The translations under genes were made by a program, and so were the position numbers. The notes below the pieces were generated by a model that worked only from the letters and a program-made list of their open reading frames with translations, was not told the origin of the DNA and ran no database searches. From Pocillopora damicornis (lineage: Eukaryota), in NCBI RefSeq assembly GCF_003704095.1, contig NW_020845487.1:62001-126000 (forward strand): DNA of 64,000 nucleotides, written 5' to 3'. This document shows positions 1 to 38,163 of this stretch, piece after piece (within the stretch, counting starts at the first letter, position 1; each line of letters begins with the position of its first letter).

Positions 1-2
1 GG

Positions 3-3000
3 ACGATGCGGAAGTTGCGGAACCATAGATAAATAGCTCAGTGCATTTGGCATGGCGCGGTAAGCAGGATGGTATGCATTGAAGAGATTGTAAAGAGATG
101 ATGGGGCAGTGGTGTGTATAACTCCAACGCTTCCAGGATTTGGAGCTTGATAAAGAACTCTCGGAATTACGGGACCTTGCTGCTGATATAGTGGAACGAG
201 CTGGCGTTTTCCACGTTTTCTAGGCGGTATGGAGGATTTTGCCGTTTCGACGTGAACGCGAACATCAGGAGAATCATCTTTTGGAGTTGCGGGCAGGTAT
301 TGTTGTAATGGTAATGGAAAACGGGATGGTGCGACTGGAGATCCTTCAAGCTCCTGAATAGCTTTTAAGTTAGCGCCAAAACCAGGCAAATGCTCCATGT
401 TGATTCCGTTTGGATTAGGTATCTCCTGCGCTTCCAGTAAAGCTTGATTCTGTAGAGCAGCTGTCTCAAGTTGATTGTAAACTGAGGGTATTGAATCGGT
501 AGATTCTGGTAAGATTAACTGTCTCTTTGTCACGTCATAACTTGGTTTGTAGGATCGCTTTGCAACTTCATGTTCACGGATCGAGGTGTTCCCTGGTATA
601 ATAGACATCTTCTCTTTTTGTTCAATGGACTTGTGTAAATCTTCTACATCATTAATTGGAGAGACAGATCCATAAAGTGAATGAGAGCCCATGAGCTGTC
701 TTTTCGTTAGTGGGTGTTGATTTATTGTTGATCGCAAAGTCTTTTTCTGAGTCTGGTCGGTGATAATTGTTTCAGTGTTTTCTGTTTTGGTTGTAGTTGT
801 TTTCGAGATTGTCGACTTTGTTATCTGTGGTTTTGATGACTTCCCGTTTAATTTATCTTTTGCTGAATGTTCAATGTGAGACCGATGAAAGTGATGAAAA
901 TCTAGCTCATCTCCATGGATCACATGATTTGGAATTCCCACATAGCTCATACTGTGTGTTACTGTTGAGCCTTGAGGAAGGAATCTGGCTGCAGGACGGA
1001 GAATAAATGAATCATGAGAGTGTAGAATAGGCTGGTTAACTGCGGGAGGTGGTTGATGGAATACTATGGGTGGTTGATGATACACAACAGCAGGCCGATG
1101 CACTACTACCGGCGGTTGATGGTAGATTATAGGTGGACGATGAAGTACTATAGGCGCTCTGTGAACTACGATGTCTGGTCTATGATAAATTTCAGGTGGT
1201 GGATGATAAATGATTGGGGGACGGCTTACCACTATGTCATTCTTTCTGGAGGCTTTTACATCTTTTACCTTTTGAGGATGTAAAATATATCCCTTTTTTC
1301 CCTCTGGTCTGGTTTCCTGTTTTCTGTGCCTTTTCTTTGGTTTTTCTGACTTAGATCTATATTTGAGCACATGCGATTTTCCGAAAGCATTGCCGTATCC
1401 ATAATTCCACCTGCCACCGAAAAAGTTTGGAGCTCCTAAGTAGGTTCCACTGTGTTGTACATGACTTGTGAAAGGAACGAATGCAGGATGAGCCATGTAT
1501 TGTTCATGTGCATGGAAAATCGGTTGTCTCACCATGGGTGCTGGTTGATGAAATACTACTGGTGGCTGATTATAGATAACAGGAGGACGATGAACTATAA
1601 CGGAAGGTTGATGATAGACAACGGAAGGTTGGTGGAGTACAATATCAGGGCGATGCACTATGATATCTGGTTTATGATACACCTCTGGTGGTGGGTGATA
1701 TACAAGTGGCGGCCTTCTTAGTACCACCTGATTCTTCTTACCACCTTTGCCACTCTGATGGCCCTTTTTGTGAAGTTTATCCTTTAGGGAATGATAAGTT
1801 GTTGTTGAATTTTTATCGGGTTCCACCGAACGTTGCTTCCTTATTCCTGCTTTCTTGACTGCACGATGAGGACTTTTGATATGTTTTTTTTCGCTATGCT
1901 TTTCGTGGGTTTTACTGAGTTCTTGGGCTTTGTCGAGGTGTTTCTCAACAAGAGACTTGCTGAATGCACGGGATTTGCTGAATGCGGCAGGGTTGGGACG
2001 AGGCAAAACTCTCCGATTTACAGGAGCAGTGGGCGCGACGTAGTTTGCTCTGTATAGTGAAGGTGAATACCATGGACCTTGGAAAGCGTTCCATCTTTGC
2101 CAACTGTTCATATTGGGTATAGCGTTATTGGAAAAACCGTAACCATACCTCCATCCCCCAGCATAGTAATGAGGTGCTCCAACGTACGTATGCGTATGCT
2201 TTATCTGAGAGGAATACGGAACAAAAGAGGGACGGCTATGGTAAATATCATGTGCAGTGTACATTGGCTGATGTACCATAGGCGAAGGTTGATGAAAAAC
2301 AACTGGAGGTGGATTATAGATAACTGGAGGACGATGGACAACAACAGATGGCTGATGATACACAACTGATGGTTGATGGATTACAAAGTCCGGTCGGTGA
2401 ACGATGATATCAGGTCTGTCGTATATTTCAGGTGGCGGATGATAAATCAAAGCTGGACGTTGTATAACAACCATGTTCTTTTTATGTCCTTTGCGGTGAC
2501 GCTTTTTATCCTCCTTTTGCGGATGCAGGGAAACGCTCTTCGCTTGTGCGTTTCCGCTTAGTTTCTTTTGTGCTCTTTGAGTACCTCCCTTAATATTGTG
2601 CGCCAAGAGTGTAGACTTAAGAAGCGTTTCTGAAGCCTTTGAAGATTCAGATGTGTCCCGTTTGGATTTGCTTCGGGGAGCCTTTTTCGAATGGGTGATT
2701 TGATTCCCTTCCTTTCCTCTTTCAATGGTTCCCACTGATCCTTTTTTAGACCCTTTTTCTACTTTAGATTTGTAAAAGGCATGCCCCATGAAATGTCCAA
2801 TACCATGTCCAAAATGCCCAGGGTAAAAGTGTGGTGCTCCCACGTAAGAACCAGCGTGCGATAAATGTGACATGAAGGGCACGAAGTGAGGATGAGCCAA
2901 GTACGTCTCATGAGCGTGAAAAATTGGCTGATGTACCATTGGCGATGGTTGATGAAAAACAACTGGTGGTTGATGATAAATTACCGGTGGACGGTGTACT

Positions 3001-6000
3001 ACGACAGATGGTTGATGGAAAACAACTGAGGGCCTGTGAATAACAAGGTCTGGTCTGTGCACAACTATGTCTGGCCTGTGATATATTTCTGGAGGAGGGT
3101 GATAGATAAGTGGTGGACGGTGCATTACTACTAAATTTTTCTTGTTGCCTTTGGAGCTATCTTCTCTGCTTCCCTTTTCACTAATTTTTCGAACCTCAGT
3201 TCTGTGAAGCGTTCTTCTACTCTCTTCACTTTCCCGTTCGATATTTTTGCTCTTGTTTTTTTGTTTTCCTGCTTTCTCAACTTTTGATTTTCCAAAGGCA
3301 TGATGGAAACCATAATCGTAGTTGCTTCCTTCCCATCCCCAGTCACCAGGGTAGAAGTGTGGTGCACCTACGTAACTATGGGTATGGTGAACGTGTGATG
3401 CAAAAGGAACAAAATGGGGGTGCGCCAAATAGGTGTCATGTGAATGGAAGATTGGTTGGTGGACCATAGGTGACGGCTGATGGAAGACAACAGGAGGTTG
3501 ATGGTAAATCACTGGAGGTCTATGTACCACTACAGAAGGCTGATGAAAAACTATTGAAGGTCTGTGAATAACGATATCCGGTCTGTGCATGACAACATCT
3601 GGCTTGTGATAAACTTCTGGTGGTGGGTGGTAAATAAGAGGAGGTCGCCGCATAATTACAAGGTTCTTTTTGTTTCCATTAAGGGTAGTTTTTGTTTCGT
3701 TTTTTAGTTTTACAACGTCTTCCAGGCTCTTTGCTTCTTGTTCTAAAGTTCTTTTGCTACCCTTGTACACCTCCTTGTCCCCTTGCTTCTTTTGTTTCTT
3801 GTGAACCTTGGCTACATCTGATTTACCAAACGCACTGTGGAAGCCATACATATCTCCTCCCATTCCCCATCCACTACCATAAAAGTGAGGTGCACCGACG
3901 TAGTTTCCACCAGTAGACACGCTTGATGTGTAAGGCGTAAAGTATGGATGAGAGAGGTAAGTATCATGAGCGTGGAAAATCGGCTGGCTTACCGTTGGTG
4001 ATGGCTGGTGGAAGACAACCGGCGGCTGCTGATAAACCACTGGCGGCCTGTGGACCACCACAGAGGGTTGATGATAAACAACTGGTGGCCTGTGAATAAC
4101 AATGTCTGGTCTGTGCATCACAACATCAGGCTTGTGATATACCTCTGGCGGTGGATGGTAGATTAGTGGTGGACGTCGGATAACAACCTGGTTTTTCTTT
4201 TTAGACTTTCTCTCTGATTTTGGTTTTACTTCCTTGTCATTTTTCGTTTGGTCATCTTTTGCTGCTCTTTTATGTTTGTCTCTCTGTGACTCTTTTGACT
4301 TTTTTCCTTTTAAGGATTCAGAACTCGTTTTGGGTACTTTTGATTTACCAAAGGCGGGACTAAAAAAGCGAGGCTGGCTCCAGCCATAATTCCATCCACC
4401 AGGATAATGGTGTGGGCTTCCTACGTAGGTGGATGTGTGCTGTATGTGGGAAGAATATGGCACTGGCACAGGATGAGCAACATAGGTATCATGAGCATGC
4501 ATAATCGGCTGATGAACTAACGGTGGAGGTTGGTGAAAGACTACTGGAGGTTGTTGGTATATAACTGGAGGTCTGTGGACAACGACTGAAGGTTGATGAT
4601 AAACAATCGAGGGACGATGTATAACGATGTCCGGTCGATGAACAACTATGTTTGGTCTGTCATATATCTCGGCTGGTGGATGGTATATCATCGGTGGCCG
4701 AGCTATAACAACTTTGTTCTTTTTGTGTCCTTTCGATTTTTCTGACGATTTTGCTTTTGTTTCGTCTTCATCACGAGTGTCGCGCTTTAATTTTGAATGA
4801 AATTTGTCCCCGCTCTTGCTTGTTTTCTTCTGGCTGTTTTTTTCGTCCTTGCTTGTCTTTCTATTCTCTACCTTTTCAACAGCTGATTTTCCAAACGCAT
4901 GACCAACATATGCACCGAACGGCTGACGATGGAAATAGTGTGGAGCTCCAACATACGTTGCTGTGTGATGAATCTGGGATGTGTATGGTACTGGAATAGG
5001 ATGGGCAAGATAAGTGTCATGGACGTGCATAATTGGTTGGTTAATCATGGGCGGAGGCTGGTGAAATATAATCGGTGGTTGGCGGTAAATTATTGGAGGT
5101 CTGTGAACCACAACTGAGGGTTGATGATACACTATTGATGGTCTATGCACCACGATATCTGGGCGGTGCATTATTACGTTTGGTCGATCATAGATCTCCG
5201 GTGGCGGATGATAAATCATTGGCGGTCTGTGAACAACAACTAGGTTCTTTCTTTCGCCTTTTTTATCCTCAGATTTTTCACCGACCTCTTTTGCCGTGGT
5301 ACTCTTAGCAATATGCCCTCCCTTGCCAGAGTTGTCTTCTTTTGATACCTTTGAGTTATCTTTTTCTATGGATGACTTTCCAAAAGCAAATCTCATTGGA
5401 TGAAAAAGATGTGGTACGTGGTACACGGGTGTTGGATGGTGCAGTACTATAGGAGGTCTGTGTATTATAACGGGAGGTCTGTGCACTACAACAGGAGCTC
5501 GATGGATAAGAATAGGTGGACGGTGTACGACCAATGGAGGTGGATGCATCACAACGGTTGGCTTATCAAATATATCTGGAGGTGGATGATATACTATTGG
5601 TGGCTGATGAACTACAAGGCCGACGTTCTGTTTCTTTGCGTTTTCATTATTTACCAATTTTTCAGTGCGTGAACGGCTTGCCTCTCTTTTTTCGTCCGGC
5701 TTTGTTTTCTGTACGTCTCCTCTTTCCTTTGTTTCAGACTCAATCTTGTAACTGGAGGTGTTCATTCGTTCTATATGCGATTTACCGTAAGCAGTTCCTT
5801 GAACAACAGACCCAAAGTAATTCCCAGAAGGATGCAAATAAGGCGACGTAGGAACCATTATGTGCTGTGCATGCGGTGTGAAGATTTCGTGGGAGTGAAT
5901 CACAGGGGTGTGAATTATCGGGGGCGGGTTGTGAAAGACGACTGGCGGCTGGTGATAAATTATCGGAGGATGGTGGACGATCGTTGGTGGTTGTTGGAAC

Positions 6001-9000
6001 ATTATCGCCGGCCTGTTGTAAACCAGTGGTGGTAAGTGCATCAAAATATCTGGTTGTCGATATACTTGAGGGGGTGGGTGATAAATAAGAGGAGGTCGAT
6101 GTATAATAACGACGTGTTTGCGGTGTCCTGGGTGAGCAAAAGCACTTATAGGACGGAGATGGTAGAAGCGCTTACTTCCGCGATGGTGATGACTGTGTCG
6201 GTGATGTTGGCTGTGATGATGATGGCGATGATGGTGATGGAGGTGACGTTTGCTCAATTCAGCTGACCTCCGTTTCCTAGACGCGTTGTTGTTCTTTTTC
6301 AGAAATGAGTCTTTGAGATGTTTCCTTTCGTGTTTCTTTTTGGATGACTTACTTTTGCTATTTTCTACTTCTGATCTTCCAAAAGCAGGTCCATACGAAG
6401 AATAGCCATATGCGTCATATGCGGGAGATGGTGTGTATCCATTAATACCAGAATAGCCGTAATTAGATGCGTAGTGGTATTGGGCTGTCTGTTCTGCAGG
6501 TAGATGTCCCGAAAGCCCCCATCCGTAATCGTTATGCCCAGGATAGAGATGAGGCGCTCCTACATATGTTGAGGAGTGTGCTATGTGGCTGACTTGTGGG
6601 TGAAACACAGGGTGAGCTACATAGGTATCATGGGCATTGTAAATTGGCTGACTAACCATTGGTGAGGGCTGATGAAACACTACTGGAGGCTGTTGATAAA
6701 CCACCGGTGCTCTGTGCACGACTACAGATGGCTGGTGGTAAACGATCGAGGGTCGATGAATTACAATATCTGGTCTGTGCACTACGATATCTGGCCGGTC
6801 ATAAATCTCAGGTGGCGGATGATAGATCATAGGAGGTCGTGCGACGATGACTTTATTCTTTCTCTCTCCTTTGGTATGCTTGCTTTTTTGCTGTGTTGGT
6901 GCGGCATGGACTTTCCCTAAATGTTTACGTTCGTGGTCTTTTAACTCATTAGTGTACTTCTGGTGTTCTAGGTGCCCTTGGTCACTGTTCTTTACGGGAT
7001 TTGCGCCCTGTGGTTTTGAAACTTCTGTTCTTCGAGCCCAGTGTGCTTGGTTTAGCGTGGGAAACATGTGTCCCGTTGGACCGCGAGGGATGTTGCCCGG
7101 ATAGTTAGTGACCCCGCCATGGGGTAAGCCTACGTAATGGCCGGCGTCATTTACAACGGAACCCATGTGAGATGCAAAAGCCATTGGGTGAACAACAAAA
7201 CTGTCATGTGAATACAGGACAGGCTGGTTAACTGCTGGAGCAGGTTGATGAAAGACGATTGGAGGTTGATGATAAACGACTGCAGGTCTATGAACAACAA
7301 CAGGAGGCTGATGATAGACAATAGGTGGTCTGTGGATAAGAATAGGAGCTCTGTGTACAACAATGTCTGGTCTGTGGTATACCTCTGGTGGTGGATGGTA
7401 GATAATAGGAGGCCTGTTGACGACCACATCTTTCTTCTTCTTACGGCTATCTTTTTTCTTTCTGTCATGATCTGTTTCCACAGCGCTTTTCTTTGACTTC
7501 TTGTCTGCAACAGAGCGTTTCGGCTTGTTAGAACTTTTGCCTTTGGAATCCTCGTTAGTAGCGTCTTTAAATGATTGGTCAGATTGTGATGTTTTCATAA
7601 TGTCGTTCTCAGTACTTTTATCTTCTATTCGTGCAACGGTGGATTTCCCATAGCCACAACCAGGGCAGTGCATGTGAATCATATGCATAGGATAGTGATG
7701 AATCAGGTGGGAATGATGAACTATCATTTGCGGTCCCTTGTGTATTATAATTGGCGGTCGATGGAAGAGTATTGGGTGGTGGTGAATGATATATGGACGA
7801 CGATGAATTATTATTGGTGGCCGGTGAAATACTAATGGAGGGCGATGAACTATTATGGGTGGTCTGTGTATAAGGACTGGTTGACGATGAATTATGATAG
7901 GGGGGCGATGTACTAGTATTGGTGGTCTGTGAAAGACGATTGGGTGACGGTGGACTATTATGTCTGGCCTGTGAACAACTATTGAAGGTCGATGAATCAT
8001 ATGGCTCGGTGGATGATACAATATTGGTGGCCTGTGAATTATTAGTAGTGTCTTTTTGGTGCTATTGGTGTTTTTGTCTGCGTTTTCGTCAGGTGTAGAG
8101 GTTTGAGTTTCCTCACTACTACGTTTATACATTTCATAAGCTGTCTCACCTTCAAATGTTGTCCGAGGGTCTGCTAATGCTCGCTGTATCCTTGCACTGG
8201 CCCCAATACGACTGTTAACGCTGCTGGTCAGCGGTTTTGTGTAAGGACTCCAAACATCGTCGATGGAGCGTTGGATTCTTGTTGCTGTTTCCCCCGAAAT
8301 AACAGTGTGTCGCTGGGGAGACAAGGAAAATTCACTAGAATACCCACTTTCCACTGGGTCGCTGAAGTATGGAAGCAAGCTGTGAAGGCTTCTCTGAATT
8401 CTAGTTTGGGCCCCAACAGGACTACGTGTCTCCCACTGCTTATGGATCAACGAATCAGACAATGCTCGCGCAATTCGTTCTCCTGCTCCAAGTTTAGCAC
8501 TGTTCTCCTTATTTTGCTTTGCACCATCTGCATGCTCCGTCTTGTTACTTTGTTTTTCATTGGTCGGCGTATCAGATTCTGTTTTTGTCTTCGTTTTCTC
8601 GCCAGAGTCTTGGTCATTTTCCTCAACCCTATGAACTTTGTCTCTACGGGTGGCTTTCATGGGGACATGAGATTTTCCAAAAGCTCCAGTGCCAATCCCA
8701 TGCATAAATATCTCTTCGTGAGGAACACCCTTGTATGTTGCTACGTGGCGGACATGTGAAGCATAGGGAATAACAACAGGCTTAGTAACCCAGGTATCGT
8801 GTGAATGCAGAACTGGTTGATGGACCATTGGTGGTGGTTGGTGAAAAACTATGGGAGGTTGATGGTAAACAATGGCTGGACGGTGAACCACTACTGGTGG
8901 CTGATGATAGATAATTGGGGCACGATAAAGTACGATAGGAGCACGGTGCACAACAATATCGGGTCTGTGATAAATCTCTGGTGGTGGATGGTAGATGATA

Positions 9001-12000
9001 GGTGGTCTATGAATGACTACGGAGTTCTTTTTGTTTGCTTTCTCTGTAACCTCCTTTGCCTTGTGATATTTCACCGGGAAACTATGACTTTTGTGAAGTT
9101 TCGTTCCTGTTTCTGTTTTGTCTTTGCTCCTTGTGAGAGGAATATGCTTTCGTCTAATGCGATGCCCTTTTCTCCCTGGCTTCGACTTTTTGTGACCTCT
9201 CTTGCCCTTCACAGTGGCCCTTGTGTCCCCCTTTTCTTCTTCAGTCTTTTCCTTCGCAGGTACCTTGGATTTTCCATAAGCCATGTAATGAACACCTCCG
9301 CCGTGTCCGTGATAATATGCATGTGGTATATGATACAGGTGTCCCACGTGATGCATTCGAGATCCGTATAGTCTCACCAAAGGTCTGTGGACGTAAGTGT
9401 CATGTGACCTGAATACTGGTTGGTGTACTACAGGCGGAGGTTGGTGGAAAATAAGAGCCGGCTGATGGTATACAATGGCTGGCCTGTGCACAATAACTGG
9501 TGGCTGATGGTAGATAATTGGAGCTCGGTGAATAACGATAGGAGCACGGTGAACCACTATTTCTGGCCGGTGATAAATTTCTGGTGGAGGGTGATAAATC
9601 ACCGGAGGGCGTCTCACAATAACTGCGTTTTTCTTTCCTCCTTTTTGGCTCTTTGCCTTTTTAGTTGTCAGACGTGAAGTAACGTTTTCTTTTCTTTCGT
9701 GAAAAGGTTTGTGGGAGGAATCTTCCTCTAGCTTTGTTGAGTTGGTATCACCACTTATTTTGTTTCGTGCGGATGCTTCCTCTTCTAACGATTTGGTGTG
9801 TTTCAAAATATGTGACTTGTAGAATGAGTATCCGTGTCCTCCTCCAAAGTGATGAACGGTGTAAGCGTCTGGAACGCCAACGTATGTGTGATGATGCAGC
9901 ACTCGCGAGGAGTAAGGTACCACCACTGGGTGAGAAATCCAGGTATCATGGGACTTTAGCACTGGCTGATGAACCATTGGTGGCGGCTGATGAAATACCA
10001 ATGGAGGCTGGTGATACACTATTGCTGGACGATGCACAACAACGGGTGGCTGGTGATAAAATATCGGTGCTCGGTGAATCATAATTGGAGGTCTATGGAC
10101 AACAATTATTGGGCGATGATAAATTTCAGGTGGCGGGTGATATATTATTGGAGGCCGTCTCACTATCACAGTGTTCTTTTTTCCTGCTTTTTCGTTTGTC
10201 TCATTCTTTGCTTTCTTACTGTTGTCCTCAAAGGAGGTCTTTTTCGAGGCAACTGCTGTAATGTTGTTACTGTCTGCAACAGTGGCGTTCTCTGACGAAG
10301 AAGAACCTTCTATTTTTGATCTTTTTCCTATGGGTGGGGGTCTTCCGAACAGTGGATTTCCGTAATTTGTAATAACGTTAGGCACCCCTACGTAATGTCC
10401 AAAATCTCGTACAACAGAGCCATGATGCGTTGCATAAAATGATGGATGGACAGTGAAAGAATCATGCGAATATAGAAGCGGTTGACTAACAGCAGGAGGT
10501 GGTTGATGAAAAACAATTGGCGGTTGATGATACACCACGGCCGGCCGATGAACAATTACGGGTGGCTGATGGTAGATAATGGGTGGTCTGTGTATCACTA
10601 GGGGAGGGCGGTGAACGACTATATCTGGGCGGTGATAAATCTCTGGTGGAGGGTGATAAATTATTGGAGGGCGATTGACAACTACGTCTTTCTTCTTTTT
10701 GTTTTGTGTGCCGTCTTTGGAATCGTCTCCGTCGTCCTGTTCTGTTTCCCTTCTTAACTTAAGTTTCCCTTTAATGCGCTCTGACGAGGTGTCTCTTTTA
10801 TTTACTACGTCGACGTCCATATTTTTGTAGCTTAATTTTTCCTTGGACCCCTCAGTTGACGTAATAAAGTCATATTGATCATAGATTTCTCTCTTTTTTA
10901 AGACCTTTGGTTTCCACAAGTTTGTGAAATAAGCCATGTAATCGCCCAAACTATCACGCTTTGTTTTCTTGAAATGATCTGGCTGTGTGCTGTTCTTAGC
11001 TTGATGTGGTACTTTTCCTTTTCTGTAAGAGCAATGTGCCCCATGACATCCCTCTCCATAGTCACCAGAGTACACGTGGGATGGAATTCCATAGTATGTC
11101 TTCGCATGGGAAACCATTGATGCTGTGTGATACACCATTGGCTTTGTAACCCAAGTATCATGCGAGTGTAAGATTGGCTGATGAACAACTGGCGGAGGCT
11201 GATGGAATACTATCGGTGGTTGGTGATATATTATTGCTGGTCGGTGAACGACTACGGGAGGCTGATGATAAATTATTGGTGGTCGATGTAGCATAATTGG
11301 CGCTCGATGAACCACAATATCTGGTCTGTGATATATCTCAGGTGGCGGGTGATAAATGATAGGAGGACGGTGCATGACAATTGAATTTTTACGATTTCCT
11401 TTAACTTCCTTTGGCTGCTGTGCGTGTGGGTGCGACAGGCTATGGGTCTTTGTATCATTTTTCTTTTCGTCGGATTTGGCATTTCTTCGGTATTGATGTC
11501 GCTCGTGTTTTCGTGAAGTAAATACATTGAGTCGGTGATATCGTTTTAAAGTTTTCTCCCAACTTTTGATATTCACTTTCCGTTTGCTTGCCTTCCCCGC
11601 ACCATGCTGTTTGTACAATGGGGCCTTTCCAGTATCGTGTTTGTCTGTTTCATTTTTCTTACCCGACAGAATTTTAGTTTTCTTAAAGGCCATCCTTGGA
11701 GCCTCAGAAGGTGAATTAACATTCCTAGCACCTAGTGATCTTACAGGGATTTCGTTGGTAGGCGCCATGCCTTGCATACCACCATTAACTCCTCCTGGTA
11801 AACCTTCCATTGCTCCCATAGGCCCTAGAGAATTAAGGCCTGCTGTACCCATGTTGCTCATGTCATTGATACCGCCAAAAGTGTTTATATTGTTCATTTG
11901 ATTTGCACTATTAAAATTGTTCAGTCCGTTCATTCCATTCATCATAAAATTTTGTGGATTCACTCCACCGAGTAGACCAGGTGGTGGATTACCAGCAACG

Positions 12001-13892
12001 TTTATGGGTGGAGGCATTGGTGTTATTATGTTCTGTCGTTGGGTGAATGGCATTCCCCCTCCAATCGGAAGCTGTGGCATTGTCCCCTCTTCAGGCATCA
12101 TACCCATCTGCGGCGATTCCATGCCATTCATTATCGGTATGTTATTATAAAACTGTCGTCTAAATGGACCGTTCATGTGTCGGAAACGCCTTTTGTGACG
12201 CTTGCGACCATGATGCTCGGGATATTCCTCCGGCTCCTCCATTCGCGACCTCTCATATAAGTAAGAATCGCGAAAATGGTGGCGATGATGGTGTGGGTAC
12301 CAATAATGCAAATGACGGCGATAAAATGGTGCGTCGTCGTAAAAACTTTCAAAACCACGCCTTTCAGGATAAGAGTGGTATGGATTGTAAAAATGACGAC
12401 GATGGAAATGTCCGTACGATCTTCGCATGCCAGGATACCAGTGGTGATGGAGATGGTATGGTGGATAATGGTAATGGTGGTAAAAAGATCGTTCTTGTGC
12501 AGCCGCTGACGCAGAATGAGAACCTGGGCGTGAGACCACCTGTAAAGAAGCAGGTTTGGCTTTGACTTTTACACCGGCAGAATTTGCGTTTATTTCCAAA
12601 TCGGCGGATTTATCGTCCACTTGAAAATGTCCCACTTCAGGCCCATTGGATGGTTTTGCTTCGCCGTCCCTTTCAGCATATGAATCAAGATCAGAAGCGC
12701 CTCGAGTTTTCACAATTTCCGATCCACTGTTTCCTAAGGCGTCTCGAATTGGTCCTACGGGTGCATTTTGAATTTGAGGCACGGTGTGTATTGCTGCTTC
12801 GCTTTCTTGAGATGATGATTGCGTTTTCGTTGACAAATTCTCCTTGCGTCCCAGTGCAGAAGCGGCGTTTTGTTCACCTGATGTAGCTGTTGTGACTTGC
12901 GTTTCTAATTTCTCAGTGGGGGTCTTAGTTTCATCACCACTGACCTGTTTATTGACATTTTCTTTGATTAATGTTTGAGCTTCCTGTGGACTTGCTTGCT
13001 TGCCTACGATAACGGCTTTAGCTACACTATTTCCTAACTGTGATGGAGACCCCGGAAATTTGACAGCGTTCTTGTCGTTAGGAAGACTTCCCATCTTTTT
13101 ACTCTCGTCAGCGTTATCCTGAACACTTCGCACCTGTGCGTTTTCATCAACTACCGTACTTACTGTTGTCTTGCTTTCCTGAACATTTGCACTGTTTTTC
13201 TCTGCAGAACGTCCACTACTATTTACATTATCACTACTTGAATCAGCTTTATCGTTCACGCCATTGTTTTCCGTTTGCAGTTCCCCACTTTCTTCTTGTT
13301 TTTTGTGAACATTGTTCTCATTTTCCCTACTCGAAGAATCCTCTCCTTCCTTTAATTCCTCTGATTTTGATTTACTGCTGACGGAGTTTTCCATCGACCC
13401 TTGCTGATGATCAGCAACAGAACTGTCAGTGGCTCCATTATCAGAGCCTTTTTTCTCTTCCTCAACTGGGACGCCAATCGATTCGCTTTCTGGCTGGTCG
13501 ACTTTAGAGCGGACATTCTCTTCAGTGTTTAAGTGCAATAAAGTATCTTTATCCACACCAGAATCTGAAGTCAAAGGCTGTATGGGTGTTTCAATACCCT
13601 GTCTCTTTTGAGGCTCTACAGTCAACAGTTGTTCATAACTACTCTTTGGCAACTCGTCCTCGACTTCGGTTGGACTTCGCTTGTCCCTCTCTATATGGTC
13701 GCCATTTTTATAGTTTATATTGTCTGGCCAATCTCCTTCATTCAAGCCTCCTAGATTACCTGTTGTATATGTACTCAGAAGATCTTGTTTAGGGTACGGC
13801 TTGGCTTGTATTGGCGACAAGTTAAGGTGAAGGAGAAGAGAATGAAATAGTGCTAAAGTCGCCAGAATATTTGGCGGCGACCAGCCAAACAT
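3..13892 (-). CDS. Gene A: giant single-exon secreted His/Pro-rich polyprotein precursor, >=4,630 aa, 3'-partial (runs off the left edge)
   Basis: ATG at 13892 gives MFGWSPPNILATLALFHSLLLHLNLSPIQA-KPYPKQ (signal-peptide-like). Hand translation of both ends and of all modules is in one frame (codon starts = 2 mod 3), ending ...YRAMPNALSYLSMVPQLPHR at nt 3. The ORF track lists no minus-strand ORF in this frame in 1-13.9 kb, as expected if no stop exists. Order: acidic pro-region, His/Tyr and Met/Gly/Asn segments, 18 His-Pro modules with basic spacers, then a Gln/Pro-rich tail with KR sites. Confidence 0.92.
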   Translation of the reverse strand, partial: MFGWSPPNILATLALFHSLLLHLNLSPIQAKPYPKQDLLSTYTTGNLGGLNEGDWPDNINYKNGDHIERDKRSPTEVEDELPKSSYEQLLTVEPQKRQGIETPIQPLTSDSGVDKDTLLHLNTEENVRSKVDQPESESIGVPVEEEKKGSDNGATDSSVADHQQGSMENSVSSKSKSEELKEGEDSSSRENENNVHKKQEESGELQTENNGVNDKADSSSDNVNSSGRSAEKNSANVQESKTTVSTVVDENAQVRSVQDNADESKKMGSLPNDKNAVKFPGSPSQLGNSVAKAVIVGKQASPQEAQTLIKENVNKQVSGDETKTPTEKLETQVTTATSGEQNAASALGRKENLSTKTQSSSQESEAAIHTVPQIQNAPVGPIRDALGNSGSEIVKTRGASDLDSYAERDGEAKPSNGPEVGHFQVDDKSADLEINANSAGVKVKAKPASLQVVSRPGSHSASAAAQERSFYHHYHYPPYHLHHHWYPGMRRSYGHFHRRHFYNPYHSYPERRGFESFYDDAPFYRRHLHYWYPHHHRHHFRDSYLYERSRMEEPEEYPEHHGRKRHKRRFRHMNGPFRRQFYNNIPIMNGMESPQMGMMPEEGTMPQLPIGGGMPFTQRQNIITPMPPPINVAGNPPPGLLGGVNPQNFMMNGMNGLNNFNSANQMNNINTFGGINDMSNMGTAGLNSLGPMGAMEGLPGGVNGGMQGMAPTNEIPVRSLGARNVNSPSEAPRMAFKKTKILSGKKNETDKHDTGKAPLYKQHGAGKASKRKVNIKSWEKTLKRYHRLNVFTSRKHERHQYRRNAKSDEKKNDTKTHSLSHPHAQQPKEVKGNRKNSIVMHRPPIIYHPPPEIYHRPDIVVHRAPIMLHRPPIIYHQPPVVVHRPAIIYHQPPIVFHQPPPVVHQPILHSHDTWVTKPMVYHTASMVSHAKTYYGIPSHVYSGDYGEGCHGAHCSYRKGKVPHQAKNSTQPDHFKKTKRDSLGDYMAYFTNLWKPKVLKKREIYDQYDFITSTEGSKEKLSYKNMDVDVVNKRDTSSERIKGKLKLRRETEQDDGDDSKDGTQNKKKKDVVVNRPPIIYHPPPEIYHRPDIVVHRPPLVIHRPPIIYHQPPVIVHRPAVVYHQPPIVFHQPPPAVSQPLLYSHDSFTVHPSFYATHHGSVVRDFGHYVGVPNVITNYGNPLFGRPPPIGKRSKIEGSSSSENATVADSNNITAVASKKTSFEDNSKKAKNETNEKAGKKNTVIVRRPPIIYHPPPEIYHRPIIVVHRPPIMIHRAPIFYHQPPVVVHRPAIVYHQPPLVFHQPPPMVHQPVLKSHDTWISHPVVVPYSSRVLHHHTYVGVPDAYTVHHFGGGHGYSFYKSHILKHTKSLEEEASARNKISGDTNSTKLEEDSSHKPFHERKENVTSRLTTKKAKSQKGGKKNAVIVRRPPVIYHPPPEIYHRPEIVVHRAPIVIHRAPIIYHQPPVIVHRPAIVYHQPALIFHQPPPVVHQPVFRSHDTYVHRPLVRLYGSRMHHVGHLYHIPHAYYHGHGGGVHYMAYGKSKVPAKEKTEEEKGDTRATVKGKRGHKKSKPGRKGHRIRRKHIPLTRSKDKTETGTKLHKSHSFPVKYHKAKEVTEKANKKNSVVIHRPPIIYHPPPEIYHRPDIVVHRAPIVLYRAPIIYHQPPVVVHRPAIVYHQPPIVFHQPPPMVHQPVLHSHDTWVTKPVVIPYASHVRHVATYKGVPHEEIFMHGIGTGAFGKSHVPMKATRRDKVHRVEENDQDSGEKTKTKTESDTPTNEKQSNKTEHADGAKQNKENSAKLGAGERIARALSDSLIHKQWETRSPVGAQTRIQRSLHSLLPYFSDPVESGYSSEFSLSPQRHTVISGETATRIQRSIDDVWSPYTKPLTSSVNSRIGASARIQRALADPRTTFEGETAYEMYKRSSEETQTSTPDENADKNTNSTKKTLLIIHRPPILYHPPSHMIHRPSIVVHRPDIIVHRHPIVFHRPPILVHRPPIIIHRQPVLIHRPPIIVHRPPLVFHRPPIIIHRRPYIIHHHPILFHRPPIIIHKGPQMIVHHSHLIHHYPMHMIHMHCPGCGYGKSTVARIEDKSTENDIMKTSQSDQSFKDATNEDSKGKSSNKPKRSVADKKSKKSAVETDHDRKKKDSRKKKKDVVVNRPPIIYHPPPEVYHRPDIVVHRAPILIHRPPIVYHQPPVVVHRPAVVYHQPPIVFHQPAPAVNQPVLYSHDSFVVHPMAFASHMGSVVNDAGHYVGLPHGGVTNYPGNIPRGPTGHMFPTLNQAHWARRTEVSKPQGANPVKNSDQGHLEHQKYTNELKDHERKHLGKVHAAPTQQKSKHTKGERKNKVIVARPPMIYHPPPEIYDRPDIVVHRPDIVIHRPSIVYHQPSVVVHRAPVVYQQPPVVFHQPSPMVSQPIYNAHDTYVAHPVFHPQVSHIAHSSTYVGAPHLYPGHNDYGWGLSGHLPAEQTAQYHYASNYGYSGINGYTPSPAYDAYGYSSYGPAFGRSEVENSKSKSSKKKHERKHLKDSFLKKNNNASRKRRSAELSKRHLHHHHRHHHHSQHHRHSHHHRGSKRFYHLRPISAFAHPGHRKHVVIIHRPPLIYHPPPQVYRQPDILMHLPPLVYNRPAIMFQQPPTIVHHPPIIYHQPPVVFHNPPPIIHTPVIHSHEIFTPHAQHIMVPTSPYLHPSGNYFGSVVQGTAYGKSHIERMNTSSYKIESETKERGDVQKTKPDEKREASRSRTEKLVNNENAKKQNVGLVVHQPPIVYHPPPDIFDKPTVVMHPPPLVVHRPPILIHRAPVVVHRPPVIIHRPPIVLHHPTPVYHVPHLFHPMRFAFGKSSIEKDNSKVSKEDNSGKGGHIAKSTTAKEVGEKSEDKKGERKNLVVVHRPPMIYHPPPEIYDRPNVIMHRPDIVVHRPSIVYHQPSVVVHRPPIIYRQPPIIFHQPPPMINQPIMHVHDTYLAHPIPVPYTSQIHHTATYVGAPHYFHRQPFGAYVGHAFGKSAVEKVENRKTSKDEKNSQKKTSKSGDKFHSKLKRDTRDEDETKAKSSEKSKGHKKNKVVIARPPMIYHPPAEIYDRPNIVVHRPDIVIHRPSIVYHQPSVVVHRPPVIYQQPPVVFHQPPPLVHQPIMHAHDTYVAHPVPVPYSSHIQHTSTYVGSPHHYPGGWNYGWSQPRFFSPAFGKSKVPKTSSESLKGKKSKESQRDKHKRAAKDDQTKNDKEVKPKSERKSKKKNQVVIRRPPLIYHPPPEVYHKPDVVMHRPDIVIHRPPVVYHQPSVVVHRPPVVYQQPPVVFHQPSPTVSQPIFHAHDTYLSHPYFTPYTSSVSTGGNYVGAPHFYGSGWGMGGDMYGFHSAFGKSDVAKVHKKQKKQGDKEVYKGSKRTLEQEAKSLEDVVKLKNETKTTLNGNKKNLVIMRRPPLIYHPPPEVYHKPDVVMHRPDIVIHRPSIVFHQPSVVVHRPPVIYHQPPVVFHQPSPMVHQPIFHSHDTYLAHPHFVPFASHVHHTHSYVGAPHFYPGDWGWEGSNYDYGFHHAFGKSKVEKAGKQKNKSKNIERESEESRRTLHRTEVRKISEKGSREDSSKGNKKNLVVMHRPPLIYHPPPEIYHRPDIVVHRPDLVIHRPSVVFHQPSVVVHRPPVIYHQPPVVFHQPSPMVHQPIFHAHETYLAHPHFVPFMSHLSHAGSYVGAPHFYPGHFGHGIGHFMGHAFYKSKVEKGSKKGSVGTIERGKEGNQITHSKKAPRSKSKRDTSESSKASETLLKSTLLAHNIKGGTQRAQKKLSGNAQAKSVSLHPQKEDKKRHRKGHKKNMVVIQRPALIYHPPPEIYDRPDIIVHRPDFVIHQPSVVYHQPSVVVHRPPVIYNPPPVVFHQPSPMVHQPMYTAHDIYHSRPSFVPYSSQIKHTHTYVGAPHYYAGGWRYGYGFSNNAIPNMNSWQRWNAFQGPWYSPSLYRANYVAPTAPVNRRVLPRPNPAAFSKSRAFSKSLVEKHLDKAQELSKTHEKHSEKKHIKSPHRAVKKAGIRKQRSVEPDKNSTTTYHSLKDKLHKKGHQSGKGGKKNQVVLRRPPLVYHPPPEVYHKPDIIVHRPDIVLHQPSVVYHQPSVIVHRPPVIYNQPPVVFHQPAPMVRQPIFHAHEQYMAHPAFVPFTSHVQHSGTYLGAPNFFGGRWNYGYGNAFGKSHVLKYRSKSEKPKKRHRKQETRPEGKKGYILHPQKVKDVKASRKNDIVVSRPPIIYHPPPEIYHRPDIVVHRAPIVLHRPPIIYHQPPVVVHRPAVVYHQPPIVFHQPPPAVNQPILHSHDSFILRPAARFLPQGSTVTHSMSYVGIPNHVIHGDELDFHHFHRSHIEHSAKDKLNGKSSKPQITKSTISKTTTTKTENTETIITDQTQKKTLRSTINQHPLTKRQLMGSHSLYGSVSPINDVEDLHKSIEQKEKMSIIPGNTSIREHEVAKRSYKPSYDVTKRQLILPESTDSIPSVYNQLETAALQNQALLEAQEIPNPNGINMEHLPGFGANLKAIQELEGSPVAPSRFPLPLQQYLPATPKDDSPDVRVHVETAKSSIPPRKRGKRQLVPLYQQQGPVIPRVLYQAPNPGSVGVIHTTAPSSLYNLFNAYHPAYRAMPNALSYLSMVPQLPHR
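900..11395 (-). repeat. 18 tandem His-Pro heptad modules (about 85-160 aa each) inside gene A
   Basis: Consensus [KR]K-N-xVVx-HRPPIIY-HPPPEIY-HRPDIVV-HRPDIVI-HRPSIVY-HQPSVVV-HRPPVIY-HQPPVVF-HQPPPMV-HQPIxHSHDTY...TYVGAPH...AFGKS. Approximate module starts (high coordinate): 11390, 10690, 10170, 9630, 9030, 8050, 7430, 6860, 6120, 5630, 5245, 4720, 4190, 3665, 3140, 2480, 1730, 1240. Confidence 0.9.
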
Positions 13893-16800
13893 TATGTGGC
13901 TTTTTAGTACATTAAAACTTTCCCAAGAAAATGAGCGCGTTCTCTCCAACCATTGTTTTGTTATTACATCACAAGTAGTTTCTATCGCCGGTCTGTGAAC
14001 AGTAAAAAGATGATATAAGGGGCGCGGAATTTGGATTAAGTCTTCTTATCTCATAAAACCAGATGGAACACCTGTTAGTTTCCAATCAAAAGTATACTTT
14101 GTGACAGGTATTCTTGTTACGGCAATCAAAACCTCCCTCTATGAGTGGTGAACTCGCTCTATGAGGTGCACAAAATACTGGTGCCTCTTTAAGTTCAATG
14201 GACAATTAAAGTGTGGGGACTTTACACCAGAAATACACAGTCACAATAACCTATTTTTTTTACTCACATAAATACTTGCAAAGTATCGAAGAAGGAAAAC
14301 ATGATTAAGCATTCTCTGTCCACCAGAGAAGCAGCGTTGCGGTTCACATCACATAACAATGATAATTAAATGTTTTTGATTTGCTTTAAGAACTCTTCGC
14401 TGACGAAATATTGGGAATTGATGTATGTGTTCAGATGTTTTAAACATTGAACTCATTTTCATTCTGTAACATGTTCAAGAGGCGATGTTTTGACTACCGC
14501 CTGCCTTATGAACAAAATGTTGGTGTCATGTCAAAGGATACAAAATAAGATATAGCTTTCTTTAAATTAAACGCTTCAATGCATTTCCTTCTATTTTCGC
14601 GGAAAAGTATGTAAACCACCTTCTAGTCAAGTGCTTGTTTTATTATTTTTTTTATTTTAACGAACCCAAAGTGGACTTAACCGAGAGGCAAACAAATAAT
14701 TTTACCAGGAAGTAACTGATAAACAAACTGTTGATGCTTTGACCAATAATTGCCCCGATGCAGAAACAATTTAAATTTAGTTTTCAAACGAAATTCTAAA
14801 ACAAAGCGGACGCAAAGCAGACTTAACCAGGTAACAAACAAATACTATTACCTTGATGTAACAATTAAACAAACTTTTGATCCTTGGATGGGTAATTGCC
14901 CCAATGCCGTAAAATGCTTTAAATTTAGTTTCCTAAGGATTTCTTAAACAAAACTATAGCTGAAAGATTTCATTCACAATATTTTATTTTGACTGAAATG
15001 CATTTGGATGACAGTTGAAATTTCAGTTCAGGTGACCGGGTACAACTCAGATTTTAGTGCGACAGACCATTAGCCTCAAGAACTTGGTGATGTTCTCATT
15101 TCCGTCAAAATTCAGTTTCGTATTTCAACATGCATCCAATTTAGCATGATTTCTCAAGCGATTTTACCATGGGGACTTTTTGTATTAATCGGTTTACATT
15201 TCAGCACGCGATGTAATTAATTAAGCACCGTTTTAAGGGATTGTTGGTCGGTTAAACACAATATGTTCGTCAGATAAAATATTTGTCGACTTTTTTTGGA
15301 TATTGCGTTGTAAGGAGGGGGCTTTAAAGTATTAAACGACCTCTTGTAACTGAGCCCTCACTTTTAAAGCAGATTTCGAAAAGTATTAGTATTGAAAATC
15401 TTACTTCATCGCCTCCTCACTACTTGTCTTGCCAAAATCTATTTCCGTTGGAAAGATGATCGTAGCTGCTGATCACGTTTTGTGGTAAACGCTGAGACGC
15501 TTTTCTTCAGAAAACAGGCTTTATTTGTCATTATTATTATGTAATGATAGTTTTAGAAGGCCAACTACAGTTGCGAAGATCAAGTGTCTATTGCACTTTG
15601 TTGGAATGATAGCTGCTTATTTTTGTAACCGAGGAAAATAGGATGCATTTTTTAGGGCTATGTTTCGGGTCACTGTCAATAGAAAACTGCAGAGAAGTCG
15701 GCTTAATTATTTTTACAAAAATTTCTTAACCGTTGCTATCTTCTTCTCTTTTTTCTTTTTTCTAAACTTGCTTCCGATAATGGAAAAGCTACTGGTGGCC
15801 GAAAATAAGTCTTACGAAGCTTACCGAACAAATTCTAACAAACAGGCCTTAAGTGAAACCCCTGCAAATGGTCTGCGCTTCGCTAGATTCTTTAATGCAT
15901 CTATAGTTTCAGTTAAATGACTGAAAACTCGTCAGCGTTCAATACGGGTTGTACTTTTAGGTGAAAAACTCCAATTCAAAGGAGATACCCAACTCATCAA
16001 GGGAGAATGTGTAATCTGTTATGTTTCCAAAAGAACTAACTCGATGGAGCTTATTGTCCCTCAATTGTCTCTCTTCCGCTAGTTCCTTTCCATGCAGCAT
16101 CAGTTTAAATATCATAGCATTACCGTGCATTGTACTCATTAACCGTTTAACTTATATTATTAGCTTTCTTTACGAATCGGAATGGGACGTGGTGTGTCTG
16201 TGCGTATCATGGTTAAATCGATGACAATTTTGAGTTTATTTGCGTTGTTCACTACTCTTCTAATATCCTTCATGAATGGTGTCTGTAGACAGAGGTAAAC
16301 TATAGGGTTACTCGGTAAATACGACACTTTCACTTCAAAGGAGAAGACTTTTCAACTTCTTGACGAAAAAACACCTGTCTTTATGAGTTGTTCACCTTTC
16401 ACACCTTATGACTATGTTGACAAAGCGTCGACTTATATCTAATTATAATCACAGACGAAATTAATTTAACTCTTTAAGGGTTCAACCAAAACAAAAGAGT
16501 TGTTGACCTTTTTCAACTACCATCAAACAAACGCCGAACCACTTGTTGACCAAAATCTCGATTAGCCGTGTTCAAACTGAGGATGTGACAAAGTTGATTA
16601 ACGCTGGCTGCATTTTGGGGTTTTTGTAAAATATAATTGGTTACAGAATTCCTCGGAGACTTCTAATTGACTTAAATGCGTTTGCTTGCGTATCGATTGT
16701 TTGTTTTGCCGTGTACATTAATATTTTATGAAAGACTGTCGTTTGCCTGTTCAAATTATACAAAATAATTGGAAAGAAAAACCAAGTTCTTGAATAAAAT

Positions 16801-17375
16801 GCGTATTAAAAAATCTCGGGCAAAATGATAATTAGTAGTTTTTGTTATATGCGTTAAAGAGTGACTTAATTTTATTTTTTAGTTAGGTACTTGTTCAGTG
16901 CAACCGACCCGCTGTAGGAGGTAACCAAATATGGCAAGGTACCCGCTGGATCTTTATCGCACTAACACAGCCATAACAACTTGAACAAAGCAAAATCAAT
17001 CTCTCCTGACTTGCCTAGCAGGTGACCTAAATAAGTTATTCATGAAAGTAACCATTTATTTCTCTCTAAGACAAAATAAAAGAAATTAATTGTATTACTT
17101 GCATTTTAAGCGTGAAACCTCATTTAAATGAAGAGAAATACCAAAAGGAAATTGGGTTTTAAAGTTCATGGTTAAGTGATAAAATTTATTGGATAACTTT
17201 CACAGATTCATTGTGTTTCGTCTTTTAAATGTTTTATTTGACACGTTATTTTCAGTATTACAAAAGAATATTTAATAACTTACGTAAGTGTACTTTTCTC
17301 TTATCTGCAACACTAGCGCGGTCTTATCAAGGGTTTAGTTTGGTCTTTCGTGTCTCGCGGAAGACTATGATCAAC

Positions 17376-37010: not shown

Positions 37011-38163
37011 AAATCGTGTTTAGATTAATTTTAAGTTTCGCTTGACCTTTCATCCAAAATTTTTTGGGAGGGATGTCTGGATAGCAGATAGCTATCAGTG
37101 GAAGGACAGTTATTTAATTAAATCAGCCCTCTGATAGAAAAAGCTTGAGGCCCAATGATTGCGTAAAACCGTGGTTTGGTTTATACCCCTTGTAAATAAC
37201 CGGCCCTATCTCTCCACATATTAGAAGTACCTTGCTGATCAGTTTAAAATGCTCTTGGGATAGGCATCATTGGAACACCATTGAAAAATGGGTTGTAGAA
37301 TGGTGCATAGCCATGACTGTATGGAACCGGCACAAAAGGAGATCGCTGTTCTTCCATCAAGCTGCGTTTCACAGGGCCTCGCTTACCTTATCACAAGTGT
37401 AAAGGACACAATGGGTGAATTAGTGACTGATCTGAGGTGAACAATTATTCCCATGAGAGATTGACTTTCTGCCACCTTGCGCCTTCCGTCTCAAGATAGC
37501 TCGCTGGCTAGCTTCTCTGGTCAAATTTGGAGTTCAGGGCTCCGATCTGAGCTTAGTAAATTTCTGCGTGGACACAAATGTCTACATTTTCACTTGCACT
37601 TTACAATGGGAAATAAAATAGTCACGTCTTACTTGATCTTCTTAAACAGTGATGTCCACAGGCTGTATGGTGACTGTGTGGTGATGGGCAGTGGCACACA
37701 GGCTCAGGTTTCAGCGGTTTGAACTCAAATTGGGGTGGTGTACAGGTACAGCAGCAGGGCCACATGCATGGCCACTTGCACTTTCCAGGAGGGGTCTTTT
37801 CTTTACAACATTCACAACCAGGGTTGTTCACAGTGGCGCCAAATTGACAGGGAAACGTGAGACTTGGGCAGCAGCCGGTGTTACATCCTGAGCAAGTGAT
37901 TGGGGCACCGAATCCTCCTTTGCAGTTGGAGCACATGGTACCGGGAGCACACCAGTCGTTTGGTCCACAGCATCCGCATCCTCCGCATCCTCCGCATCCT
38001 CCGCATCCTCCACATCCACCGCATCCACATCCTGGTCCGTAGCCTCCCATGTAATCACAGCCGCCAGAATCGAAGGAATCTCCGCATCCCCAGCATCCGC
38101 CACATCCGCAGCGTTTTTCTGCAAGTATTTAAATCGTGTTTAGATTAATTTTAAGTTTCGCTT
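37011..38163. repeat. Perfect 33-bp direct repeat (37011-37043 and 38131-38163) bracketing the coding exons of cassette 5
   Basis: aaatcgtgtttagattaattttaagtttcgctt occurs at both positions, 1,120 bp apart. Confidence 0.9.
37244..38118 (-). CDS. Gene E cassette 5: Cys-domain exon 37633-38118 plus peptide exon 37244-37386 (recent paralog of cassette 3)
   Basis: 486-nt phase-1/1 exon, nearly identical to cassette 3 in the Cys domain. Next exon SKRGPVKR-SLMEEQRSPFVPVPYSHGYAPFYNPFFNGVPMMPIPRAF* (weaker AAG acceptor). UTR exon from 36666 is similar to that of cassette 3; AATAAA at 36471-36476. Confidence 0.8.

Follow-up and report, generated by a model that had tools for sequence, protein, structure and literature searches.

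What kind of gene underlies a stretch of coral DNA whose translation places a histidine at about every seventh residue, and what might such a repeat do? The question arises from a 64,000-nucleotide window of the Pocillopora damicornis genome (G000:C2122:62001-126000, from an assembly of 234 Mb in 4,393 contigs), in which an original prediction had drawn attention to proline-containing heptads between positions 900 and 11395 and had proposed that they bind metal or drive assembly in response to pH. Positions given here are window coordinates unless contig G000:C2122 is named, and the repeat gene lies on the minus strand throughout. We find that the heptads form the central array of an intronless, single-copy and transcribed coral gene, whose product of about 705 kDa is basic, almost free of cysteine and has orthologues across Cnidaria; we hold this description with high confidence. 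The whole statement, which joins to this giant cnidarian protein an inferred mechanism of pH- or metal-gated β-assembly, is offered more tentatively and could well prove wrong.

The heptads lie in a giant single-exon gene

Six-frame translation of the window gives a minus-strand frame without stops at positions 3-14045, which comprises 4,681 codons, holds 150 matches to H-x-P-xxxx and runs past the start of the window. When the flanking sequence is included, the whole frame has 6,290 codons and ends in a stop at G000:C2122:57173-57175, outside the window. Its first ATG is at 13892 and yields a product of 6,239 amino acids. A database protein (P0001) has the same length and the same N-terminus, and this start is shared with other coral orthologues. 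The single-exon coding sequence thus occupies window positions 1-13892, an assignment based on the stop-free frame, the agreement of ATG and length with P0001, and RNA contigs collinear over 9601-13945 or 9601-13970. In a program-made list of open reading frames, no entry in positions 1-14000 is longer than 188 amino acids. Giant terminal exons are invisible in this list because frames that leave the source sequence, including this 14-kb frame, are dropped from it.

The gene also appears in RNA data. Six RNA runs contain at least 89% of the sampled words from a stretch of about 6 kb of the gene, and four RNA-seq runs, drawn from three studies, yielded contigs that follow the genome collinearly between 9601 and 13847-13970. 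The gene is therefore transcribed, and unspliced over the examined part, although the contigs carry no information on expression level or strand. The contigs of run X3 stop at 13945 and those of run X14 at 13970, which places the 5′ end of the transcript approximately there, 55-80 nucleotides upstream of the ATG. Upstream of the 5′ ends, the depth is zero in three of the four runs, and at 14540-15500 it is zero in all four. Run X12, which is metatranscriptomic, has a 937-nucleotide contig (13603-14539) reaching about 570 nucleotides beyond the 5′ ends of the other three runs; this extension may stem from a different start, from unprocessed RNA or from DNA carry-over. In run X14, an apparent 21-nucleotide insertion behind 11330 was considered as a polymorphism in the number of heptad units and was rejected, as it arose from another module of the same contig being aligned with module 1. 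A genome-wide search with a module profile (234 Mb) gave 19 matches, all within the one frame, and the gene is therefore single-copy. An Rfam search of the window gave no match.

Eighteen modules with a conserved order of heptads

The array occupies positions 888-11402 (amino acids 831-4335) and consists of 18 modules with Lys/Ser/Glu-rich spacers, as defined by alignment, hidden Markov model (HMM) and composition. The 18 module starts, which follow the pattern [RQK]-P-[PA]-x-x-Y-H-P-P, fall at 894-11402 on the minus strand, in agreement with the location originally predicted. All 18 predicted modules are real, although they make up just the middle of a 6,239-residue protein that extends past the window. 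They align column for column, with a mean column identity of 67% among the 16 typical modules. Each begins with a Lys-Lys-Asn lead-in, continues with 9-10 heptads, the motif HSHDT[YWF], a short His/Pro segment, the motif YVGxP and a Gly/aromatic stretch, and ends in a closing motif [FYA]-x-[KR]-S-x-[IVL] (e.g. A-F-G-K-S-x-V), after which a variable Lys/Ser/Glu spacer follows.

In the direction of translation, module 1 (11040-11402) has an HMM score of 184.5 bits, and modules 2 (10344-10706), 14 (3318-3680) and 18 (894-1256) were placed by alignment. Alignment and HMM together place modules 3 (9828-10190), 4 (9282-9644), 5 (8679-9041), 7 (7086-7448), 8 (6510-6872), 9 (5769-6131; the most divergent full module), 10 (5277-5639), 11 (4899-5261), 12 (4371-4733), 13 (3846-4208), 15 (2790-3152), 16 (2130-2492) and 17 (1386-1748). 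Module 6 (7662-8066) departs from the pattern, being a long and almost pure series of HRPPII[VH]-type heptads that gives two HMM matches, of 70 and 33 bits. The prediction that the order of the heptads is kept and that HSHDT and YVGxP motifs follow them is correct for order. The His/Tyr/Gly-rich tail that carries these two motifs is present in 16 of the 18 modules, but modules 6 and 10 lack it.

The typical heptad is H-[RQ]-P-[PDSA]-[IV]-[IV]-[YVFI], and each heptad has its own conserved identity. For example, heptad 2 has a single Glu, heptad 3 an Asp, heptads 1, 2, 5 and 7 a last-position Tyr, and heptad 8 a Phe. Such a conserved order suggests a register that is defined in three dimensions or by binding, rather than a generic low-complexity spacer. 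The periodicity itself is far above chance: the array holds 97 canonical heptads (H-x-P-x followed by three hydrophobic residues), compared with 1.6±1.2 (maximum 7) in 500 shuffles, and 151 instances of His at both i and i+7, compared with 35±5. Of 352 distances from one His to the next, 128 are exactly seven residues. The description of the ladder as strict was, however, too strong. In a set of 41 modules, taken from three species, His occupies the first position in 40-41 for heptads 2, 4 and 7 and in 33-39 for heptads 5, 6, 8 and 9, but in only 30 in heptad 3 (where Asp occurs in 9), 21 in heptad 10 and 11 in heptad 1. The third-position Pro is found in 35-41 of these modules in all heptads but one, where it is found in 30. 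At the DNA level, Tandem Repeats Finder reports periods of 21 bp and 42 bp across 1543-8875, which bears out the predicted 21-bp period, although the matches are just 61-78%.

The modules are ancient and strongly constrained

A word-based protein search returned 25 proteins. Among them are full-length orthologues, all named ‘hypothetical’ or ‘uncharacterized’, in Stylophora pistillata (PFX26305.1; 6,136 amino acids, 89% identical in the part used as query), Oculina patagonica, Acropora palmata, Nematostella vectensis (LOC116618347; 5,019-5,088 amino acids) and Hydra vulgaris (LOC100210570; up to 4,519 amino acids), and orthologue lengths reach 6,329 amino acids. Members of this group are collinear in sequence and keep the same module order (E=0, with 55-89% identity across the 701 amino acids of the query), with module counts of 19, 19, 15 and 13.

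Individual modules can be followed between species. Module 2 is 93% identical to module 2 of Nematostella and 83% identical to a Hydra module, compared with 82% for its closest paralogue. Modules 1-4 and the last module pair with the Nematostella modules of the same rank, with the first, second and last being reciprocal best matches. Module 18 matches best the last module of Nematostella (79%) and that of Hydra (73%). Module 2 thus matches its counterparts in other species better than any paralogue, and the modules are old and not the result of a recent expansion. Moreover, between modules within the window the median proportion of synonymous differences (pS) is 0.83, which is saturated, and that of non-synonymous differences (pN) is 0.17. 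The array is therefore ancient and under strong purifying selection. This median pS exceeds the 0.75 expected of random sequence; it could mean that codons are chosen so as to keep the DNA copies different, thereby countering recombination, or could simply reflect codon-usage structure.

We also searched a profile of the 16 typical modules against 1.84 billion representative proteins, which gave 421 matches at E≤1e-3, 40 of them at E<1e-30. The strong matches span the whole module with an identical signature and are fragments of this gene family. About 100 weaker matches cover the heptads alone, and nearly all of them are near-perfect tandem repeats of seven residues, with a median period-7 self-identity of 0.775 compared with 0.31 in true modules. 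We rejected homology with these heptad-only sequences, since they are near-perfect translated simple repeats. No credible relative outside Cnidaria was found in this search, in which most library entries carry no taxon name. Two of the matches (P0148 and P0183) are short proteins with non-identical heptads of the types x-x-P-V-V-V-H/Y and Q-E-P-Q-V-V-Y, and could represent a convergent strand-plus-Pro-turn design outside Cnidaria. A variant of the module is seen in hydrozoans (P0097, P0105 and residues 1964-2078 of the Hydra protein P0020), where a His-rich stretch and a small group of Cys, C-x-C...C-x-C, come after the heptads; this variant is absent from the coral protein.

The module belongs to no named family or solved fold

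The original prediction did not recognise the repeat as a named family, and our searches agree: Pfam, PDB sequences, the ESM Atlas and the 1.84-billion-protein search return unnamed cnidarian orthologues or simple repeats, and the HMM built from the 16 typical modules matched no well-characterised family. No Pfam family matches the window protein at E≤1. When 16 single modules were compared with Chorion_3 (PF05387), the best had an E-value of 0.099 and 12.5 bits, below the 22-bit cut-off. This cut-off is passed by the Hydra orthologue (P0020; 41.4 bits) and by one coral orthologue (P0016; 32.7 bits). However, these whole-protein scores, and also the precomputed PF05387 tags, are sums of 10-11 weak stretches. 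Similarly, 5 of the 16 modules respond to Cuticle_3 (PF11018), with a best E-value of 1e-4, below the cut-off of 27.1 bits (module 1 scores 15.5 bits). We read both signals as a resemblance in composition and not as membership. A profile search of PDB sequences gave just one chance match (E 0.55), and the best ESM Atlas matches, at a cosine of up to 0.78, are unnamed clusters. No paper on the protein came up in literature searches that used locus and protein accessions, words from its peptides or topics (nematocyst, adhesive, matrisome and His-rich coral proteins), nor is it among the entries of the Nematostella matrisome supplements.

With regard to structure, a coiled coil is excluded. Nearly all heptads have Pro as their third residue, and many have it as their fourth too, so that with one or two prolines per heptad such a structure is impossible, as the original prediction had argued; AlphaFold2 gives no helix either. 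With an alignment of the 16 paralogues, AlphaFold2 gave no secondary structure, a mean predicted local distance difference test score (pLDDT) of 56 and a predicted template-modelling score (pTM) of 0.13. A second alignment, with module 14 as its query, had 31 rows, namely the 16 paralogues, six modules from a TARA coral contig and nine single-module fragments, and gave a mean pLDDT of 66 with 57 residues at 70-90 and a pTM of 0.25. In this model, strands of 3-4 residues are predicted on the hydrophobic triplets of almost all heptads, at residues 7-10, 15-17, 22-24, 29-31, 43-45, 50-52, 57-59 and 64-67, with a pLDDT of about 70-77, and two longer strands are predicted in the module tail. The model would support a local reading alone, in which each heptad is one mini-strand followed by one Pro turn. 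A comparison of this low-pTM model with solved folds gave no match (Foldseek E>5, best VIA Z 2.7).

A possible pH- or metal-gated assembly

The composition of the module suggests how the conserved heptads might act. His makes up 15.7-19.2% of the heptad core and tail and accounts for nearly all of their titratable charge. The computed charge falls from +11.6 at pH 5.5 to +2.1 at pH 8.1 for the heptad core, and from +8.7 to +0.1 for the tail. Based on these values, we consider a pH- or metal-gated β-assembly plausible. Each heptad would provide one short β-strand, made of three hydrophobic residues and the His, and one Pro-kinked turn, so that a module would be a stack or meander of about ten mini-strands whose net charge is set almost wholly by the His ladder. 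While the protein is in an acidic secretory compartment, protonated His would hold the Ile/Val/Tyr strands apart and keep them soluble. At the neutral to alkaline pH outside the cell, core and tail would become nearly uncharged, and β-rich assembly could follow within or between molecules. The regularly spaced imidazoles could perhaps be further locked by Zn, Cu or Ni, and conserved Tyr together with spacer Lys might add oxidative cross-links. Since the spacers would remain cationic throughout, the result would be a beads-on-a-string block copolymer in an extracellular or organelle-lumen material common to cnidarians. Candidates for this material, in the order in which we would rank them, are part of the cnidocyst, an apical matrix or a cuticle, and an adhesive.

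Several observations weigh against this mechanism. The computed net charge at pH 8.1 is still +287 for the whole protein and +234 for the module array. Lys-rich spacers thus keep the protein cationic at every pH, so neutralisation of the modules alone cannot collapse the whole molecule, and a polyanionic partner is probably needed rather than a change of pH alone. Several positions of the ladder tolerate Asp, Asn, Gln or Arg, and therefore an unbroken metal-binding ladder is not required. The original suggestion that arrival in seawater acts as the trigger is weakened further, as the module is equally conserved in the freshwater Hydra, and seawater is therefore not the trigger. Furthermore, the predicted tertiary arrangement is unreliable at the pTM and mean pLDDT of the 31-row model, the 16-sequence prediction was unstructured, and no known fold resembles the model. 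The mechanism as a whole rests on composition, conservation and a weak model. A still bolder proposal, which we regard as doubtful, is that the modules adopt an undescribed Cnidaria-specific fold, a Pro-kinked His-ladder stack of about ten strands predating the split between Anthozoa and Medusozoa, which acts as a pH/metal latch, and that 13-19 such latches form the backbone of a pan-cnidarian material. In this proposal, proteomics would have missed the material because R-P and K-P bonds resist trypsin.

Other readings of the module array

One specific role, which would be compatible with the pH switch, is that of a structural component of cnidocysts, whether in the capsule wall, tubule or spines of nematocysts or in spirocysts. 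Its cationic modules would pack against poly-γ-glutamate or chondroitin in an acidic post-Golgi vesicle and harden on maturation. The named orthologues come solely from corals, an anemone and Hydra, and thus match Cnidaria exactly, and the window is a gene cluster for secreted Gly/Tyr-, Gly/Cys- and Cys/His-rich proteins (see below). In the Hydra orthologue, the signal peptide is followed by a stretch that ends in a dibasic pair and resembles nematocyst propeptides, although the anthozoan orthologues have no obvious propeptide ending in KR. Gly/His-rich runs in the Hydra spacers also recall spinalin (cited in PMC12945647). On the other hand, the protein lacks the Cys-rich domains (CRDs) of minicollagens, NOWA, CPP-1 and cnidoin-type wall proteins; none of its four Cys in 6,239 amino acids lies in a CRD pattern. 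Neither the searchable literature, queried by accession and peptide words, nor the Nematostella matrisome supplements gave a match. Judging from the sequence, R-P and K-P bonds would conceal the module from tryptic proteomics. Given this balance, we see both the cnidocyst role and the packing that it would involve as possible, though on the unlikely side. A cationic scaffold is a more distant prospect. Here the modules would bind a polyanion or polysaccharide, such as a sulfated glycosaminoglycan (GAG), chitin, acidic matrix proteins or mucus, with the ladder of His and Arg as a spaced recognition surface and not as a switch for self-assembly. The charge that the array keeps at pH 8.1 would suit this role. 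The most conserved polar residues are the first-position His and the second-position Arg or Gln, and the identity of each heptad has been kept for more than 500 million years, which fits a defined binding register. However, a heptad with three β-branched or aromatic residues in succession would more usually be expected in a core that is buried or stacked than on a face that binds sugars or anions, and comparison with Pfam and PDB sequences showed no likeness to chitin-, lectin- or GAG-binding domains. We rate a scaffold of this kind as quite improbable.

The closing motif raises the further question of whether the chain is cut. If the protein were a polyprotein precursor, cleavage at the closing motif or at basic spacers would free 18 polypeptides of about 110-170 amino acids that would act individually, for example in matrix, antimicrobial or adhesive roles. 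The closing motif does occur 21 times in the protein, compared with 1.0±1.0 in shuffles, ending 15 modules and recurring in C-terminal motifs, and it also ends the Gly/Tyr and Gly/Cys modules of a neighbouring gene at 17367-23255. The protein also contains 180 dibasic pairs and 14 KRQ sites. However, the KRQ sites are almost all C-terminal and do not lie between heptad modules, and the complete protein has just five minimal furin motifs (R-x-[KR]-R), with two of them in the array; because of this scarcity of sites, we rejected a furin-cut polyprotein as the principal reading. We know of no protease that recognises [FYA]-x-[KR]-S-x-[IVL]. The positional orthology of modules from coral to Hydra suggests instead that their order in one chain matters, and overall we give a precursor little credence. 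Lastly, the array might have no function, being a translated 21-bp minisatellite or an unconstrained disordered spacer. The many weak HMM matches that are near-perfect 7-mer tandem translations, and the unstructured outcome of the first AlphaFold2 run, could be taken to point that way. However, true modules have less than half the period-7 self-identity of those repeats, and module 2 is 83-93% identical among coral, anemone and Hydra. In our judgement, the open frame of 6,290 codons, the orthology, the transcription and the contrast between pS and pN refute this reading, which we consider extremely improbable.

Other regions of the protein

The full protein has a computed mass of about 705 kDa and an isoelectric point (pI) of 9.8, and contains 11% Pro, 7% His and 7% Lys. 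The module array accounts for 401 kDa, with a pI of 10.0, 10.1% His and 12% Pro. The N-terminus (amino acids 1-30; 13803-13892) resembles a signal peptide, has a hydrophobic core, ends in ..IQA before a conserved KPYPKQ and is conserved in at least 15 orthologues, and the Nematostella and Hydra orthologues have analogous hydrophobic N-termini. No other hydrophobic segment was found in the 6,239-residue protein. The protein thus looks secreted by way of a putative signal peptide. A roughly neutral Ser/Glu/Asn-rich region follows (amino acids 31-469; 12486-13802), and the charge of the N-terminal 800 amino acids as a whole is about 0 at pH 8.1. Translation further reveals a His/Tyr/Arg-rich patch (amino acids 469-547; 12252-12488), which has a counterpart in Hydra, and a Met/Gly/Asn/Pro-rich low-complexity region (amino acids 589-714; 11751-12128). 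Within the array, the spacer before module 9 carries a patch of about 23 residues that are almost solely His, Arg and Ser (6180-6248).

The C-terminal region (amino acids 4336-6239) begins at 1-887 and lies mostly outside the window, its extent being known from translation that includes the flank. Over its approximately 1,900 amino acids (G000:C2122:57176-62887, minus strand) it contains about a dozen short alternating strands of the form x-V-x-V-x-V-E-T-A-K-S (e.g. P-R-V-S-V-N-V-E-T-A-K-S) and 13 KRQ sites followed by a hydrophobic residue. Both the strand motifs and the KRQ sites are also conserved in cnidarian fragments such as P0074 and P0066.

Neighbouring genes

Taken together, the genes of the window resemble a cluster that encodes secreted, low-complexity proteins. 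Next to the repeat gene, a gene at 17367-23255 (plus strand, Met at 17367) encodes a signal peptide, an acidic region and then Gly/Tyr-, Gly/Leu/Ala- and Gly/Cys-rich modules. These modules end in [FYC]-x-[KR]-S-x-[IVL], e.g. F-Y-K-S-K-I-P-K or C-G-K-S-K-I-S-K, and several of them start after Lys-Arg. The presence of one closing motif on chemically unrelated modules of adjacent genes suggests a common processing, sorting or cross-linking step, and gives the polyprotein reading its chief support. Farther along, 37625-48672 (minus strand) holds five open frames that start after Lys-Arg and contain Cys/Gly repeats and a shared, conserved Cys-rich end, and within it 48034-48672 (minus strand) is a leader frame that is acidic and has a signal peptide. 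Three more minus-strand frames (51075-51764, 54226-54954 and 62380-62808) end in extreme Cys/His runs with CCH and CCEP units. A run of N occupies 32667-32766.

Significance

A domain built mainly of His, Pro, Ile, Val and Tyr that is 83-93% identical among Hydra, anemone and coral is among the most constrained ‘low-complexity’ sequences that we can cite. Given such extreme constraint, the module must do something exact. Should the His ladder act as a latch controlled by pH or metal, the module would offer materials science a compact, Cys-free and switchable β-module of about 70 residues, and the protein would join the components of an extracellular or cnidocyst material as a new, conserved and giant member. 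The most exciting case, if true, would be that of an unrecognised major cnidocyst component, with the closing motif marking a wider family of modular precursors in the cluster. The orthologues in Nematostella and Hydra, which are genetically tractable, open the function of the protein to direct study.

Comparison with known systems

The only Pfam models that respond to the modules describe insect extracellular structural proteins hardened after secretion, namely Drosophila chorion s36/s38 (Chorion_3) and pupal cuticle protein C1 (Cuticle_3), and the likeness consists of stretches rich in His, Pro, Val and Tyr. A different comparison is offered by the (VHLPPP)8 repeat of maize 27-kDa γ-zein, which self-assembles and forms an amphipathic polyproline-II helix (PMC6184761). 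The coral heptad resembles it in being short and Pro-rich, with one His and aliphatic residues per unit, and the two are not homologous. However, the γ-zein period of 6 is a multiple of the three-residue turn of the polyproline-II helix, which puts the His on one face, whereas the coral period is 7. An amphipathic polyproline-II repeat was therefore considered and rejected on the grounds of this period, the β-strands predicted by AlphaFold2, the three hydrophobic residues in a row and the frequent Tyr and Phe.

In its predicted unit of one mini β-strand and one turn, the module resembles the Ca2+-binding β-roll of RTX nonapeptides and to the solenoids of insect antifreeze proteins. In RTX proteins, ion binding in the turns triggers folding outside the cell, which offers a possible analogy for the turn lined by His and Asp in the coral module. 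Unlike β-solenoids and β-rolls, however, the coral module has neither Gly-rich turns nor the Asp pattern that binds Ca, and a coil of two heptads (14 residues) is hypothetical. Cnidocyst proteins such as minicollagens, NOWA, CPP-1, cnidoin and spinalin, which is Gly/His-rich, resemble the coral protein in being restricted to Cnidaria, secreted, repetitive and Pro-rich. The coral protein differs from them in having no Cys-rich domains, collagen triplets or sequence similarity, and in being ten to a hundred times larger.

There is also a likeness in kind with His-rich structural proteins of marine invertebrates. Nvjp-1 of Nereis jaws is cross-linked by metal through His-rich domains, and the His-rich proteins of squid beak undergo pH-dependent coacervation. 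The coral protein resembles these two and the flanks of mussel preCols in being repetitive, of low complexity and His-rich, with a His content appropriate to this functional class, and in looking secreted, and it could similarly serve to cross-link or condense an extracellular material. Metal cross-linking by preCols is likewise mediated by His-rich domains (PMC4944945). There is no sequence similarity with any of the three, which are Gly/His- or Ala/His-rich without a fixed register, whereas the coral module is a Pro-kinked heptad repeat in which each heptad is individually conserved, with 83-93% identity across classes of Cnidaria. The heptad architecture, the extreme conservation and the giant single-exon gene are new, and in kind the protein takes its place beside the known His-rich structural proteins.

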